In this document: positions 12,332 to 20,078 of the stretch, piece after piece
How the letters are laid out: each line of letters opens with the position of its first letter
Numbering within the stretch: position 1 is the stretch's first letter
Origin: Corallochytrium limacisporum Hawaii
Lineage: Eukaryota > Protista > Pluriformea
Assembly: GCA_002811645.1 (NCBI GenBank)
Contig: PDIP01000073.1
Location: forward strand, 167,524 to 231,523
Length of the DNA: 64,000 nt
Reading direction: 5' to 3'
The notes under the pieces: generated by a model
Told to the model about the DNA's origin: nothing
The model's input: the letters and a program-made list of their open reading frames with translations, nothing else
The model's database searches: none
Translations under genes and position numbers: made by a program

Positions 12332-13355
12332 GGTTATTGATATGCCCGCCAATAGGAACTACTTTTTTCTAGGTTAGAGCCTTTGATAGATCTCTTAAGG
12401 AGGCTTCAACAGGAGGTATTCCCTAAGCATCTCAGGTTTGATCTGTAATATTCAGTTCGCTTCACTAAAGCTTACTAAGAAAGGGAAGTTGGATCATCTG
12501 AGCCTTGAGGATGGTTGCCCCTTCTCAAATATCTTCAATGAGATGAAATCTGTTGCCAAGGCCTAACCCACACCAACGCACACGTCTCTCACATGAATCA
12601 ACGCGGGGTTCGCAACTCGGGGTTCACCCCTTGCGGACGTCACAAAGGCACGACAGGCGCTTCAGGGGAGGTTGTGTACTGGGTCCCCCCGTTTTTCCCT
12701 GAAGGCAGACCGACGCGACGAAGACCACCCGTGCCAAACATACAAAGGGACCCAAAAAAAATGGAAAGGGAGTTAAAAAAAAAGCCAACAGCTCTCGAGC
12801 TCGTCTTGGATAGCGAGTGATGACGAATCTACAACCCCTCCCCCCGGGGGTTCTACTTATTTTTGGAAGCAATTTGTTAACCTCACCGGCCTTTCCCCGA
12901 GGGCTCGGGAGTGAATCTGGTACCTACGAGATCTATATGTCCCTTCCCACCCTATTTACGCAAAGGCAGTACGTTTTATATTACGCTTTTCTAGTGCAAT
13001 TTCACAATGTGCGTCATTTTATGCAGGGCCTTTCCTGACCATCCTGCGCGGCGACGAGGAGAACCGTTTCAATGCGTCCCGCGACCGTGGGTGGGAGCCG
13101 CTGGAAACGGGCGCAGACAGTCGTCTGTGAAGAAATTCGAGCCACCAAATCCTTCGGACTCGCCCTGTACTTTCAGTACGCCCACCAACGCGAGACAAGG
13201 GCTGGCCGGGAAGGGAAAAGAGGAGCTTGAGGTTGGCGGGGCGGGGGATCCTAGGGGAGGACTCGCAGTCCCAGGACGGACCGCGCTGCAAATGATGTGC
13301 ATCTCTGCCATGCCAAATTCGGCACCCTTGGGCACCCTCGAGGGTGCGTATGTGC

Positions 13356-13360
<5 letters not shown>

Positions 13361-13424
<64 letters not shown>
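13361..13424 (+). repeat. (TG)n microsatellite
   Basis: About 32 perfect TG units. Confidence 0.98.
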
Positions 13425-13747: not shown

Positions 13748-14486
13748 AATGCAACGGTTTTGCAAGATTCGGGGAATCGTACAGGTGTTTGATCGATAGC
13801 GGCGTTTGCAAGTGAGACATCAACCCACATTGCTTTGTGTGTGTGTGCAGTCCTTGAAGACGAAAGATCCGAGGACCTGATGATCATGGTGATACTGATG
13901 ACGATGATGCTCCTGGATGCTGCAGCACCGAACGATAGTTTGTCTATGCCAGCGCGGGATTCAGCCCAGTGCTCGTACGCCCAAAACACATGGGTCTCAA
14001 AATCCTTCGGAGGCGGATATCTGATCCATCTCTTGGCCCATTGGGGGGGGGGAATTTTTGCCAGTCCATTGTCCACCAAAAACTCTCTTGGCACAAAAAA
14101 AATACCAAGCTGGTGCTGTGCGCCAGGACAGAGTGAAAAAAGGTGGAAAGAAAGTGTCCCCCCCCCTTCTCCTCCCGGCCTTCCTTTTCCTCCTTTTTTT
14201 TTTTTTTGGTGCCTGGCAGGGGGGGGGAGACGGCGCGGTGGGTTTGTTTGACCTCCCCGCAGTCGGTTGGCGCGCACGGTGATTGGACGCTTGGACAGGT
14301 GCGGCCGCATCCAACCCAAGGAGAAGGTGCACATGCCATAGGCGCCGTACTGAGAGCCTCCTACGTGATCTCTTTAGATATTTGTGACCGACCACTCGCA
14401 AGTGAATCGTAAGCACGGAAACTACGGATTGATGCTCGACGCGCTCAGGGCTACAGAATTGAGCGTTGGGACCAGAGGCTTTTAAT

Positions 14487-15161
14487 ATGCAGGGTCTCAA
14501 CATCCCCGACAAGGCCAACATTGCACTCTGTGCCGCGTTCATTGCCCTGGTCTTTTCTGCAGGAATACATCTACTGTTTTTGGGTGGCGCGGGATCCACA
14601 TTCGGGGCGTATCTGGTCGCACTGAGCTCGTTCCATTTCTTTGAGTTCCTGGTACAGGCCATCTACAACGAGAAGCTGACTTCGTCGGAGTCTTTCTTGC
14701 TCAACCACAGTACAGCGTATCACATTGCTGCTGTGGTCAGCTGGACCGAGTTTTTTGTAGAGCTTTGGTTCTTTCCGTGGTTAAAAACATTTTGGCCGCT
14801 GCAGATTACCGGGGTGGTGGTCGTGGTGGCGGCAGACATTGTGCGCAAAGGATCTATGGTCCATGCAGAGCACAATTTTACACACATTGTTCAGGATAAA
14901 AAGCGTGACGATCACAAGTTGGTGACCACCGGAATCTACAGCTATTGCAGACATCCATCGTATGCAGGTTTCTTCTGGTGGAGTGTGGGCACCCAGATCT
15001 TGCTAGCGAATCCCATCTGTGTCCTTGCTTATGGATACACGAGCTGGAATTTTTTTGACGATCGGATAAAAGAAGAGGAGTCACACTTGGCGCGCTTTTT
15101 CGGACTGGAATACTTGCGCTATCGGGATCAGGTTAGCTCTGGAGTACCTTTTATCAAGTAG
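14487..15161 (+). CDS. ICMT: Protein-S-isoprenylcysteine O-methyltransferase (Ste14)
   Basis: SFLLNHS, NFTHIVQ..K..DHKLVTTGIYSYCRHPSYAGFFWWSVGTQILLANP, FFDDRIKEEE..L..FFG.EY and a GVPFI C-terminus. First ATG is at 14487. Confidence 0.97.
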   Translation: MQGLNIPDKANIALCAAFIALVFSAGIHLLFLGGAGSTFGAYLVALSSFHFFEFLVQAIYNEKLTSSESFLLNHSTAYHIAAVVSWTEFFVELWFFPWLKTFWPLQITGVVVVVAADIVRKGSMVHAEHNFTHIVQDKKRDDHKLVTTGIYSYCRHPSYAGFFWWSVGTQILLANPICVLAYGYTSWNFFDDRIKEEESHLARFFGLEYLRYRDQVSSGVPFIK

Positions 15162-15186
15162 AGAATGTAATCCGAAAAGAAGCTAA

Positions 15187-16977
15187 ATGCAGTTCAGATT
15201 TAAAGTACAAGGTATGCGTTCTGTAGAGGACCGTAGTGGAGCCTTTCACACGCAGTACGTGATAGAAATGCTTCTGTTTGACTCAGATAAAGTGAATCCT
15301 CGAACGCCACAAGCGAGTGCCTATGGCCGGCTCTTGGGCAATGAGAACACCACACGGCATCCTGGTGATCCCAGTGGAGATGTCTGGGTGAGACGCTACA
15401 GCATCTACCGAAGGTACAAACAGATCCGCAAGCTGCACCAACACCTGGTGAAACATTTTCCGGAGTGCGCATGTGCCACTGCAGATTTTCCCGTGAAGAT
15501 TCCCTTCGGAGGTAATATCAAAGTTGTGGGCCTGAGTCGTATGGAAGCATTCCAGAAGTACTTCGATCTCCTGAGCGGGTGTAGTGATGTATTGCAGGAG
15601 AGCATTGCTGTGCGGCATTGGCTAGAGGCTGTTTACAAAATCAATTGCCTACATCGCACATCGGTGTTGTGTTATCTATGCAGTAAACAGGGACGGACAC
15701 TGCTTTCCTGTCCCGCGACATACACTGTGGACCAGAACGGGACTCTGTGGCTCCAATGGCGGTGCCGGGAGCACGGAAGTCAGCGACACATCGTGGCCCA
15801 GAGTGCGAACGACTGGCTCAAGACGCATCACTATTTCACCATTCCGCGGAGCCTGAACATCATTATTCGAGGGGATCGCAATCCCGCGGTACGCACGATT
15901 GTGTTAGGGAAGGATGAAGGGAGCTGGAACTCTGCTTTGTCCTCAGTCAATTCATCTGTCCACAAAGTTGTGTGCTCTGATCCGGAGAGAGTCGTACAGA
16001 TGAGTGATCATCTGCTGGAAGTCCTTAAGCAGGAACCGAAAAGTGTCATCCCTGTGATCGTGGAGGGCACTATTGGTAGCTTAAGAAACTTAGCTGCCTA
16101 CGAGCAAACCTGTCTTCTAAATCGCCGAGTGTACCCATCACTCCTGCTTGACATCGATGCAGACACAGATGTAGAAATCATCATTTCGGAACTGAAGTCC
16201 CTACTAGCTCATCTGCGCACCATCACCAAGCTGAGGGTACTGATCCATGCTGTCCTACATGTGGTGGAAACGGAGATTGTCGGTCCTGTCATTGCTTCAC
16301 TGATGAAGTACGTGAATAGCGAGATACCTCTGATCCGGTGCTTTGTTATCGGTCTCAAGCACGACCCTCTGCGGCACCTACGACTGCAACGGAGCCAGAG
16401 AGAGGTTGTCAATGCATCCTTTGATACCCTGGCAATGATCCGCAGCATAGGGAAAGCCCTGCCCTATGAATTGAAACCCGACGACTTCCGGCCGCTACAG
16501 TATATGCAAATGGCGGCGCCCTTACTGTCCGTGCTGAAATGGGGCGAGTTGAACTTTAATATCTGCCCGCATCAGGCCATCGGTACTGTATTATACAAGG
16601 CCTCGTCATCTACCGGCGAAGTGGTCCCAATGACAAAGTACATTGACGTAGACGTCCTGCGGGATCATCTCTATAAGTCACTGGACGATCTGCGAGAGGA
16701 TAGCCCGTCAACATCGTCCGTGCTATCCCTTCTCTCCACATACAACCAAGCATTCGGAAAATCAATGCTCAAGAAGCACCGACCGAACGTCTTCCGCTTC
16801 CTCAGCTCCGAGGGCTATCGTCAAGATGCGCTGAACTTTAGCAAGCGTCTACAGTACATTGTGGTGCGGCGGGAAGCCACAGCGCTGAATAACCCAGACG
16901 CGGAATGCATTGGATGGCCGGACATGGAGGATCCAGAACATGCTCGGCTCTATGACATCATTCACGGTCACAGATAA
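15187..16977 (+). CDS. PX-domain protein fused to a degenerate Tes/GDGT-MAS (MJ0619-family) radical-SAM-like region
   Basis: aa ~1-148 form a PX domain (TQYVIE, IYRRYKQIRKLHQHL..HFP, FPVK, R.EAFQKYF..L). aa 156-197 (TSVLCYLC...PA....NG.LWL.WRCREHG) match the Tes N-terminal CxxC...CxxHG site. DDFRPL and CPH.A.GT.LY......VVPMTKYIDVD match the Tes C-terminal half. No CX3CX2C motif. Confidence 0.7.
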   Translation: MQFRFKVQGMRSVEDRSGAFHTQYVIEMLLFDSDKVNPRTPQASAYGRLLGNENTTRHPGDPSGDVWVRRYSIYRRYKQIRKLHQHLVKHFPECACATADFPVKIPFGGNIKVVGLSRMEAFQKYFDLLSGCSDVLQESIAVRHWLEAVYKINCLHRTSVLCYLCSKQGRTLLSCPATYTVDQNGTLWLQWRCREHGSQRHIVAQSANDWLKTHHYFTIPRSLNIIIRGDRNPAVRTIVLGKDEGSWNSALSSVNSSVHKVVCSDPERVVQMSDHLLEVLKQEPKSVIPVIVEGTIGSLRNLAAYEQTCLLNRRVYPSLLLDIDADTDVEIIISELKSLLAHLRTITKLRVLIHAVLHVVETEIVGPVIASLMKYVNSEIPLIRCFVIGLKHDPLRHLRLQRSQREVVNASFDTLAMIRSIGKALPYELKPDDFRPLQYMQMAAPLLSVLKWGELNFNICPHQAIGTVLYKASSSTGEVVPMTKYIDVDVLRDHLYKSLDDLREDSPSTSSVLSLLSTYNQAFGKSMLKKHRPNVFRFLSSEGYRQDALNFSKRLQYIVVRREATALNNPDAECIGWPDMEDPEHARLYDIIHGHR

Positions 16978-17063
16978 CGCGAATAGTGAGCCATGCGGAA
17001 GCAAATACGTGTATCATAAGAACGTCACCAATACTACTATTTTACATATGCTTTTGTCGTGCA

Positions 17064-17546
17064 TCATGCTGATTCGTCCAGCGTAAGCTCAAAGCTACAT
17101 GCTGGCAATTCCGAGAGTTCTGCCCGCACCACCGCATTGTAGCGCAAAGCAAATAGTACGCCTCGGATGATACCACACGGCAGCGCCAGGAGTGAAGCCG
17201 CTTCCTCAATGTACTGCCGTCCCGTGGCCAGGGGTATGAAGAGGCTGAGATCGTTGTCCTGGAGAACGTACGTGCCCTTGTGGTTGGTGCGCAGATTATC
17301 GATGGGTTTGTTGAAACAAGTTTGCCATACATCGCGACAGATAAGTTTAATGCACTCCAGTTGGTTCATAGTGGATGGCCGGTTGAGTGACAGTTTCTGT
17401 GCCAAACTAAGTCCCACCTTGTAACCCATATATTCTAGTTTCGAGTACGCTAGATCTCTTGTGTCAGTTGTCACACTGTTGGCAATAAGCTTCACACACT
17501 CCGTGTGAAACACTTGGAAGAGCACATCTGTAGGTCTTGCGTCCAT
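17064..17546 (-). CDS. TRAPPC6: TRAPP complex subunit 6 / Trs33 (Bet3 family)
   Basis: KLEYMGYKVG..L, IKLICRDVW...F.KPIDNLRTNHKGTYVLQDN, PCGIIRG, LPACSF. Confidence 0.96.
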   Translation of the reverse strand: MDARPTDVLFQVFHTECVKLIANSVTTDTRDLAYSKLEYMGYKVGLSLAQKLSLNRPSTMNQLECIKLICRDVWQTCFNKPIDNLRTNHKGTYVLQDNDLSLFIPLATGRQYIEEAASLLALPCGIIRGVLFALRYNAVVRAELSELPACSFELTLDESA

Positions 17547-18270
17547 AATTGTTAACTTTCCGTTTCTTCGGATCTGGTGCCTTCACTCTGTTCGGATCCG
17601 ATGCCTTCACTAACTCCTTTTGTTTTCGAGATCTCTCAGTGCGCATTATTCGCACAGCATGGAAGAGTAAAGACACGTTCTGTTCATATTAATTACACCA
17701 ATTATAGAGAACATACGGTCCAAATTTCTACTGTTTCAAGAACCCGTTCTGATTACCATACCCGTGTTGTTCAAAAACAAAGTCCGTACGCGCCCCAGCA
17801 GGGCACTAAAGGCAGACACCTGGAAAGATCGAGAGACCAGGGGACCCCCTCGCCCGCCCTCCCGCCTTTCTGTGCGGGACGAGATGCCAATGTCCAATCG
17901 AGGAGAATTGGATTTCCTTCTCCCTCCCCCCCTCACACAGCTCCCAGCCCGACAAGGACTCACCCGAGGATCTATGACCAGTCCCTCTTCCGGGGGAGGA
18001 CTTCATCGTGTACAGTTTCTACTGAACTGGTTCTTCTTATGAGAGAACACTAGGCTGACGTTAAGTGGGATTGATTCTTACGGCGAACCTGCGACAATGT
18101 TCGTCGCCGCGCCTTGAGTTCAACGCATTGCCCTACATTAAGCAGCAGTACTATTAAACGAAACATACTATCCATGAATGACATCTTGGTCAAGGAGTAT
18201 CATCTGCAGAACCTGAGAGAAATTTCCATAGAGATAGCTTCGAAGCAGAACGGTTTGGCGCTAGAAGAAG

Positions 18271-19224
18271 ATGGCTTTGTCTGTGTCTCCTCGGAATAGT
18301 CAGGGATCATGGGGGGAGCAGGAGGCACCATTACCTAGGCGCCTCTCGACTTTTGAGATCTCACCACGGAATTCAGTTTCATTTGCCGGAAGTTCCATAA
18401 GTGTGGGCGGGTACCCGAATCCGACTGGAGTATCTACACGGATGGGCAAAGCCAGAAGCGACTGGGTGGACTGGGCCGCTGCTACTGTGTTGGTAGTTAC
18501 GGTCAGTATAATCTGCAAGCTTGTGCCCACTATCTACCGAAAATATCCACAGATGCTCGAGGGTACAGATGATAATGTAATTGGGTATCAGTATAACGAG
18601 GATACCGTCAGCGTCGTCAACCTATTCCTGATTATCATCCTTGGGCCCCTCCTGACCTTCGGCAGTTGCTATTATTTCCGCCACAAGAACAGTCAGGAGT
18701 ACCATGACATCTCACTGGCATTCTACGAAGGCCTTAGCCTAGTAATCTCTGTGACGGAGATCCTGAAAAAACTGGGCGGCCGATTGCGGCCGGATTTCGC
18801 ACAGCGGCTACAATCGGGTGATGCGTCAGTCATTGCGGAAGGTCATCTCAGCTTCCCTTCGGGTCATGCATCTATGAGTTTCTACGCGTATGTAATGATC
18901 AGTCTCTACCTTGCCGGTACATTTCACGTCTGGGGTCGGGTCAGGCAGCCGTTCTGGAAATTTGTGCTCACGACGTTCCCGCCGATGGTGGTGCCAGGTT
19001 TCATCAGTTTTACACGGGTATGGGATAATCGGCATAACTACGATGACATCCTGGCCGGGGCTTTGATTGGGAGCGTGATTGCTTTCATGGCATACCACCG
19101 ACACTTCCACTTCATTCTCGATCCGAATGTGTCAGGATTCAGGCGCTTTGTGGACAAGGAGAGCCTGTTGCAGGAAGGGGAAGTCAACGCTCCCCTGCTT
19201 GTGCCTTCGGACGACAATGTGTAG
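18271..19224 (+). CDS. PAP2-superfamily lipid phosphate phosphatase (Dpp1/Lpp1/PLPP-like)
   Basis: All three catalytic motifs: KKLGGRLRP, SFPSGH and TRVWDNRHNYDD. About six hydrophobic segments. Confidence 0.95.
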   Translation: MALSVSPRNSQGSWGEQEAPLPRRLSTFEISPRNSVSFAGSSISVGGYPNPTGVSTRMGKARSDWVDWAAATVLVVTVSIICKLVPTIYRKYPQMLEGTDDNVIGYQYNEDTVSVVNLFLIIILGPLLTFGSCYYFRHKNSQEYHDISLAFYEGLSLVISVTEILKKLGGRLRPDFAQRLQSGDASVIAEGHLSFPSGHASMSFYAYVMISLYLAGTFHVWGRVRQPFWKFVLTTFPPMVVPGFISFTRVWDNRHNYDDILAGALIGSVIAFMAYHRHFHFILDPNVSGFRRFVDKESLLQEGEVNAPLLVPSDDNV

Positions 19225-19366
19225 ATCCATCCACAAAGAAAATTTTCAAAACGCATACAGTGATTAAAGAATGTCAACGCATTTCAAATAGGTACATGTC
19301 GCTTTAAGGGTGTATACTGGATCTTTGCGTGAAGGCAGAGATATTAGCCGTTGATAGATCCTTTAC

Positions 19367-20078
19367 TTACTCGTCATCATCCTTGCCAGTATCCTTCCAG
19401 TCTTTCTTGATGGCAAAGGACCAGTCCCAGGCCAGGTGCACGTTCTTGTCATCATCAATGAATTTGCTCTTGACTGTGTAGGTGCCACGGGCCAGCATGC
19501 CGGCGGGAGCTTCCTCAACGGCGCCTTTGTAGGTGTACGGTTCTTTGCGAGGACCGTAGCTGCCGACCATGTACTCGCTCTTGTCCACACGGACACCCTT
19601 GCGATAGACTACCTGCAAATACTTCAGACCGGAAACGATCTCCCGTTGGACCCGGAACTGGATGTTCAATTGATACTCACAGCCTTCCTTGATGATAAAT
19701 CGCTTGTCTTTAAGGTTCTTGTCGTTGTGGGCATCTGTATAATTGCAAAGGAAAGATAATAGTCATAGGTGCAAGTCAGTATGGTTAGTTATCCTGTTTT
19801 CATGCTAAGCCAAAAGGAAAACAAAATGTCCCCGTGTGATACTTACTTCCTAGGTCGAGCTCAATATCATCCCGGTCCTCAGCCTGCAGGATCAGCTTCT
19901 CGCCAATGAAGCAGCGAGTGTCGTTGGGGTCAGAGTCAGCCTGTTCGGAGAGCAGTGACGCCTTCCATTTGTTCAATGCTTCGTCATCAGCATCGAGGTT
20001 CTTCAGTGTATCCAGGTCAACCTTCTTGGGCGCGACGTATCCGGGGGTCTCCTCGGGGAGCTCCTCAGCCTCAGGCAT
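19367..20078 (-). CDS. ARHGDI: Rho GDP-dissociation inhibitor, two exons (20078-19847 and 19734-19367), 199 aa
   Basis: [16 protein letters not shown] in exon 1. [37 protein letters not shown] and W.F.IKKDW in exon 2. Intron 19735-19846 (GTAAGT...ACTAAC...TACAG) joins the two exons in frame. Confidence 0.96.

Follow-up and report, generated by a model that had tools for sequence, protein, structure and literature searches.

A PX domain joined to a radical-dead Tes-like core in Corallochytrium limacisporum, and the eukaryotic family to which it belongs

Enzymes of the Tes/GDGT-MAS type (MJ0619; PDB 7TOL and 7TOM; NF045702; IPR034474) have so far been described from archaea and bacteria only (PMC9433317 Suppl. 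Fig. 5; PMC8941075). GDGT-MAS holds two lipids in hydrophobic pockets, phospholipids of E. coli were found to co-purify with it, and the lipid head groups are contacted non-specifically (PMC9433317). The ligands of its C-terminal cluster are three cysteines and Met439, and a comparable enzyme, the GMGT synthase Gms, is a three-cluster radical-SAM protein for lipid C-C coupling with a proposed Tes-like mechanism, which lacks a rubredoxin domain (PMC13459092). The fate of these enzymes touches on an open question, namely the replacement of archaeal membrane lipids in eukaryotes. Chen et al. reported in 2025 that most Hodarchaeia and Heimdallarchaeia are devoid of tes, inferred its early loss, and described GDGT synthesis as harmful to cells with bacterial-type membranes (PMC12042123).

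The window considered here is the whole 64,000-nucleotide stretch analysed from the genome of Corallochytrium limacisporum, a single-celled relative of animals. At positions 15187-16977 of its + strand, on which all features of the gene given below also lie, a complete single-exon ORF of 596 aa in an intact frame joins a PX domain to a Tes-like core that has lost the radical-SAM machinery. A search of the genome found this gene as a single copy; the second match to the Tes HMM is MoaA/MOCS1 and hence not a paralogue. Contigs of two public 2015 assemblies, probably made from RNA, span the ORF with neither gaps nor joints, and the interval 14300-14413 is uncovered in both; the gene is thus unspliced and probably expressed. 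Upstream, in the region 14466-15187, lies an ICMT gene whose stop at 15161 is followed after 25 bp by the ATG of the PX-Tes gene, and a convergent gene for a TRAPP subunit follows downstream. The contigs of both runs extend over all three genes, although contigs cannot demonstrate a shared transcript. A short ATG-TAA occurs at 15165-15170, with its ATG missing from the second strain, and spurious ORFs at 13300-13420, upstream of ICMT, stem from a long intergenic GT dinucleotide repeat.

The neighbouring genes are eukaryotic (ICMT, the TRAPP subunit, a cation exchanger, PAP2 and RhoGDI), and the GC3 of the ORF, 0.58, is similar to theirs. ICMT, PAP2 and RhoGDI, the last in two pieces (19367-20078), are clustered within 6 kb (14466-20078); this proximity is probably a coincidence, because the ICMT/RhoGDI neighbourhood is absent around relatives at the four other loci or genomes inspected. 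Two strains both have the ORF uninterrupted and differ within it at eight positions, five non-synonymous and three synonymous. All eight fall at 15210-15881 (aa 1-232) and none in the last 1.1 kb, numbers that are too small to interpret. A recent lateral transfer or a contaminant in decay might leave such differences, five of the eight changing an amino acid, and the long branch of the protein, described later. Against it, the gene sits among eukaryotic neighbours of matching GC3, keeps its frame in two strains, has an architecture in common with Capsaspora, and falls in a eukaryote-only clade in which relatives contain introns. This explanation is largely refuted, and we regard it as very improbable.

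The PX domain occupies aa 1-150 (15187-15636), much as the initial annotation had proposed. Pfam PF00787 matches aa 70-147 (E 8e-8, 33.1 bits against a cut-off of 21.6), and the region can be aligned with the PX domain of KIF16B (E 0.012). The start at ATG 15187 is favoured because M28, the start of the database model, is Val in the second strain. The canonical phosphoinositide-site residues are present: as in sorting nexins and other PX proteins, KIF16B among them, there is an RRY (R75-R76-Y77), a Lys after the proline-rich element (K104, in K104-x-x-F107) and a helix-2 Arg (R118), with the RR pair represented by one Arg only. We know of no described PX protein with a domain derived from a radical-SAM enzyme, and literature searches for such a combination found none. 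The residues R75-R76-Y77, K104 and R118 agree with published definitions of the PX phosphoinositide-binding motif (PMC8340361).

For the remainder of the protein, the proposal had been a degenerate homologue of Tes/GDGT-MAS, to be given up if profile or structural matches did not exist; matches of both kinds were clearly found over the whole core. NCBIfam NF045702 (Tes) is hit with E 5e-8 and 31.9 bits, well below its membership cut-off of 450, and a profile of 93 prokaryotic Tes-like sequences scores the core at 38.8 bits, compared with at most 3.9 for shuffled sequences and -3.1 for the reversed one. A profile built from eukaryotic relatives only finds the GDGT-MAS chain 7TOL with E 9e-17, with the next chain at E 0.99, and profile-profile alignment to the prokaryotic Tes-like proteins runs end to end over 431 columns (probability 99.7%, E 1.7e-25). 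The AF2 model of aa 154-596 has a pLDDT of 82 and a pTM of 0.86 (a single-sequence run, with pLDDT 37, was uninformative). Foldseek relates this model to 7TOL/7TOM at E 1.8e-14, the next match being at 2e-3, and VIA aligns 376 of its residues with 7TOM at Z 22.7 and rmsd 3.8, the next match scoring 8.5. Tes rows were part of the alignment from which the model was folded, so sequence and structure do not count as two wholly separate lines of evidence. Local matches to HIV protease, Sar1 and EgtD are weak and due to chance.

A partial TIM barrel, which the initial annotation had suggested looking for, is retained in the model as a degenerate, six-stranded structure at 15880-16371, with strands near aa 236, 259, 290, 315, 351 and 383. 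It is followed at 16414-16872 by the counterpart of the Tes C-terminal helical region, with DFxP at aa 433-436, Q463, P481 and Q556. In GDGT-MAS the lipid pockets are probably lined by this region. Columns that are hydrophobic in Tes (MJ 276-445) are hydrophobic here in 25 of 37 cases, against a background of 44%. The last part, aa 563-596 (16873-16974), is an eroded tail of low model confidence, from which the His/Cys cluster ligands of the family are gone. The protein thus has in common with Tes/GDGT-MAS its domain order, a fold of about 376 residues, the rubredoxin-like Cys3His site, the DFxP motif and the C-terminal helical region, but lacks CX3CX2C, the ligands of the N- and C-terminal clusters, the SAM contacts and Tyr459, and has an added PX domain. 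Judged by its sequence and model, it is clearly derived from Tes without being one.

Individual residues were compared using a Methanocaldococcus Tes with MJ0619 numbering as the ruler, and the motif positions first described were right: C162 (nt 15670), C165, C193 and H196, DDFRPL at aa 432, CPHQ at aa 460 and GEVVP at aa 477. The rubredoxin-like site (15649-15798) is retained, as had been claimed, its C162, C165, C193 and H196 falling in the columns of the MJ0619 ligands C9, C12, C33 and H36 (PMC9433317). The HMPTM zinc ribbon PF23545 matches aa 155-204 (E 5e-4), and the site is probably a structural one for Zn or Fe. Thereafter, at 15799-15879, there is just a short linker; by column counts and profile alignment two parts that Tes has here, its N-terminal [4Fe-4S] domain and its CX3CX2C loop, are missing, and the whole segment with the auxiliary-cluster ligands C73/C77/C80 is lost. 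As noted initially, both CX3CX2C and the C-terminal Cys cluster are missing, which was borne out by column mapping and by a scan of the + frames, none of which has a CX3CX2C in the ORF region. No Pfam match to radical SAM PF04055 occurs in the protein, the GGE motif is lost, and the MJ0619 adenosine contacts F106, G145, R210, Q268, S271 and R275 are not conserved.

The three C-terminal cluster cysteines of GDGT-MAS are, judging from conservation, probably 338, 455 and 470. In the Corallochytrium protein the first of these is Q463, the position of Met439 is R561, and the tail is unaligned. C460 had been paired with the cysteine of the Tes HxxC motif, a pairing three residues out of register: it is Q463 that is aligned with the Cys, and C460, which falls on the His, is therefore no retained ligand. 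That the C-terminal cysteines might be restored by an intron or a frameshift was considered and rejected, as the contigs are unspliced and the other + frames have no Cys motif. All three Fe-S cluster sites of Tes are gone; the predicted protein cannot function as a radical-SAM enzyme, and the coupling of phytanyl tails through C-C bonds would be implausible for it with no radical-SAM cluster.

This protein is not alone. Word-based searches for homologues recovered nothing beyond the protein and, at most, one relative, and exhaustive searching with phmmer was required to find 32 relatives, at 21-31% identity. The named ones come from Capsaspora, Chromosphaera, Thecamonas, Arcella, Gefionella, Hemimastix, Percolomonas and Spongospora; the others are environmental, and those inspected sit among eukaryotic genes. 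Relatives contain introns, and additional metagenome copies are split into exons (L012-L016, L018, L019 and L021); these were found by exon-by-exon search, were not joined, and were excluded from alignments and trees. A family profile built without the Corallochytrium protein gives it 165 bits (E 1e-49), compared with 103 bits for the best prokaryote. Collections of phages, plasmids and IMG/VR were also searched and returned no member. One member is automatically annotated as a radical-SAM superfamily enzyme, so that the similarity may already be visible in databases.

The closest described architecture is that of Capsaspora CAOG_02988 (A0A0D2WNG1, “PX domain-containing protein”), a PX domain with a Tes-like core that is 23% identical over 532 columns, matches by BLAST across both domains (E 2e-18) and has lost the same cluster cysteines. 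It differs in keeping a His at the Met439 position, in its multi-exon gene and in its neighbours. It is uncharacterised, and a literature search for it found no paper. The suggestion that PX-Tes fusions might be found in other protists therefore held for Capsaspora; the accompanying idea that some might keep CX3CX2C did not, the motif being present in none of the 33 aligned members. Most members have neither PX nor any other extra domain, and Spongospora and four environmental members have FYVE instead, with its basic HHC core motif retained. This motif binds PI3P. An environmental member (L006, 371-860) begins with a degenerate PX-like segment (pairwise E 0.002, no Pfam match), retains the C-terminal cluster ligands and groups apart from Capsaspora, and is possibly a second PX fusion. 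The broad family, the staged losses and the FYVE fusions go beyond what had been noted at the outset.

Among the 30 members other than the proteins of Corallochytrium, Capsaspora and Chromosphaera, the first C-terminal cluster position is Cys in 25, the second His in 24, the third Cys in 27 and the fourth Cys in 26, often with an extra Cys nearby. Most non-holozoan members thus retain three cysteines, with His in place of Met439, which suggests a predicted Cys3His centre; the three named holozoans have lost all three cysteines. The radical chemistry disappeared a single time, in the ancestor from which the broad eukaryotic family descends, and it was only later that the C-terminal cluster went, as holozoan members show. 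Another environmental sequence (L174:8001-9557, P0025) groups with Capsaspora and Chromosphaera (SH-aLRT 85-92), keeps the three cysteines, has Arg at the His position and shows no PX upstream; it is a possible intermediate in cluster loss.

With regard to function, we lean, without great assurance, towards a pseudoenzyme derived from Tes before LECA that would hold lipid tails and be recruited to PI3P membranes. Removal of the radical machinery from Tes would leave a lipid-holding shell, whose former two-lipid hydrophobic cavity could bind, sense or shuttle lipids, and the PX domain would dock the Corallochytrium protein on PI3P-rich endosomal or phagosomal membranes. Fusion to two unrelated PI3P readers, PX and FYVE, may be taken as the strongest clue to the family's site of action. 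The additional Cys3His centre of most non-holozoan members could add redox or oxygen control, which would be lost in the Corallochytrium protein; this protein, as the fastest-evolving member, may have drifted from the function of the family. A prenyl-specific role would have as its sole pointer the local neighbourhood, which is not conserved.

A less likely alternative, though one to be taken seriously, is a protein-binding adaptor of the sorting-nexin type, with PX as the endosomal anchor, the dead Tes fold as a scaffold and the lipid cavity in disuse. The loss of all cluster ligands in the Corallochytrium lineage, its very long branch, and new family-conserved residues with no counterpart in Tes, such as R298, P317 and the ER pair before P394, would all suit an adaptor, but full-length members retain the full core of about 420 aa with its hydrophobic pattern largely kept. 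It is also conceivable that members of the family act on lipids as metalloenzymes without radical chemistry, or as redox sensors, through the rubredoxin site and the C-terminal Cys3His, and that the Corallochytrium protein retains some activity. The cluster positions that are mostly Cys/His in 30 members, often with an extra Cys close by, speak for this, as does the location of the C-terminal cluster next to both lipids in GDGT-MAS, where the rubredoxin domain, on the other hand, lies at the surface (PMC9433317). The absence of all three cysteines from Corallochytrium, Capsaspora and Chromosphaera makes such a reading possible for the family but hardly for the gene in question; it is more plausible for members with the C-terminal centre retained, and as an account of the whole we consider it improbable.

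In phylogenetic trees the eukaryotic sequences come together in a single clade (100/100), whose stem is about 4 changes per site long. The Corallochytrium protein lies inside this 33-member clade (SH-aLRT 100) and has its longest branch (2.6-5.9). An AU test permits (p 0.43), but does not establish, a placement beside Capsaspora and Chromosphaera, so that a single PX fusion in holozoans is likely rather than proven. In one phmmer pass, which cannot show absence from animals, fungi or plants, members were found in seven lineages (Holozoa, Apusomonada, Amoebozoa, Malawimonada, Discoba, Hemimastigophora and Rhizaria). This distribution points to presence in or near LECA, although the internal tree is poorly resolved; transfer among protists could also have spread the family.

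The source of the family is of the Tes type, because it has the rubredoxin domain that Gms lacks. In an LG+C20 tree the clade attaches within the main group of Asgard Tes, at low bootstrap values of 22-56. When the clade was regrafted on all 63 prokaryotic branches (LG+F+G4), a Promethearchaeota/Helarchaeota pair was best, Methanothermococcus and another Asgard row followed within 2 log units, and most archaeal positions were not rejected, in a comparison biased by its sampling, most Asgard rows having been selected for the highest scores against the eukaryotic profile and the remaining prokaryotes having been taken from one motif scan. Nesting within the deltaproteobacterial/Synergistota clade is rejected (AU p at most 0.002), and sisterhood to this whole clade is not (p 0.18). 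From these sequences, the family appears to be an archaeal-type Tes, with an Asgard origin weakly favoured. No radical-dead intermediate was seen in Asgard archaea, where 121 of 251 genomes gave matches, and the near-complete top ORFs keep both CX3CX2C motifs in 29 of 29 cases. It is quite possible, though we would not call it probable, that the tes gene of the Asgard host was disarmed before LECA by deletion of the radical-SAM loop, kept as an endomembrane lipid-handling protein, and later coupled repeatedly to PI3P readers; if true, the family would be a direct eukaryotic relic of archaeal monolayer-lipid biosynthesis.

The eukaryotic Tes-like family is apparently undescribed. Literature searches, with thin coverage of many subscription journals, found no report of eukaryotic Tes homologues, and the accessible portion of a 2026 paper on Asgard contributions makes no mention of Tes. 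A radical-dead Tes in seven lineages suggests that early eukaryotes possessed the gene and that it was then inactivated, not deleted, which bears directly on the early loss inferred by Chen et al. (PMC12042123). The proteins also offer a stepwise pseudoenzyme series, from four metal sites in Tes through a predicted two in most protist members to one in the Corallochytrium protein. Capsaspora and Corallochytrium are both in culture, which makes the question directly open to experiment.

A few observations concern the prokaryotic sequences. Tes-like genes from bins labelled Bacteroides and Anaerovoracaceae (L023 and L107) resemble the Tes of Methanomassiliicoccales and are probably binning contamination. 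One Tes from an Asgard phylum (L162, G006:C1) groups with a Desulfurococcaceae sequence and Hadarchaea/Archaeoglobi, apart from the other Asgard copies, and several Asgard genomes contain two or more Tes-like genes.
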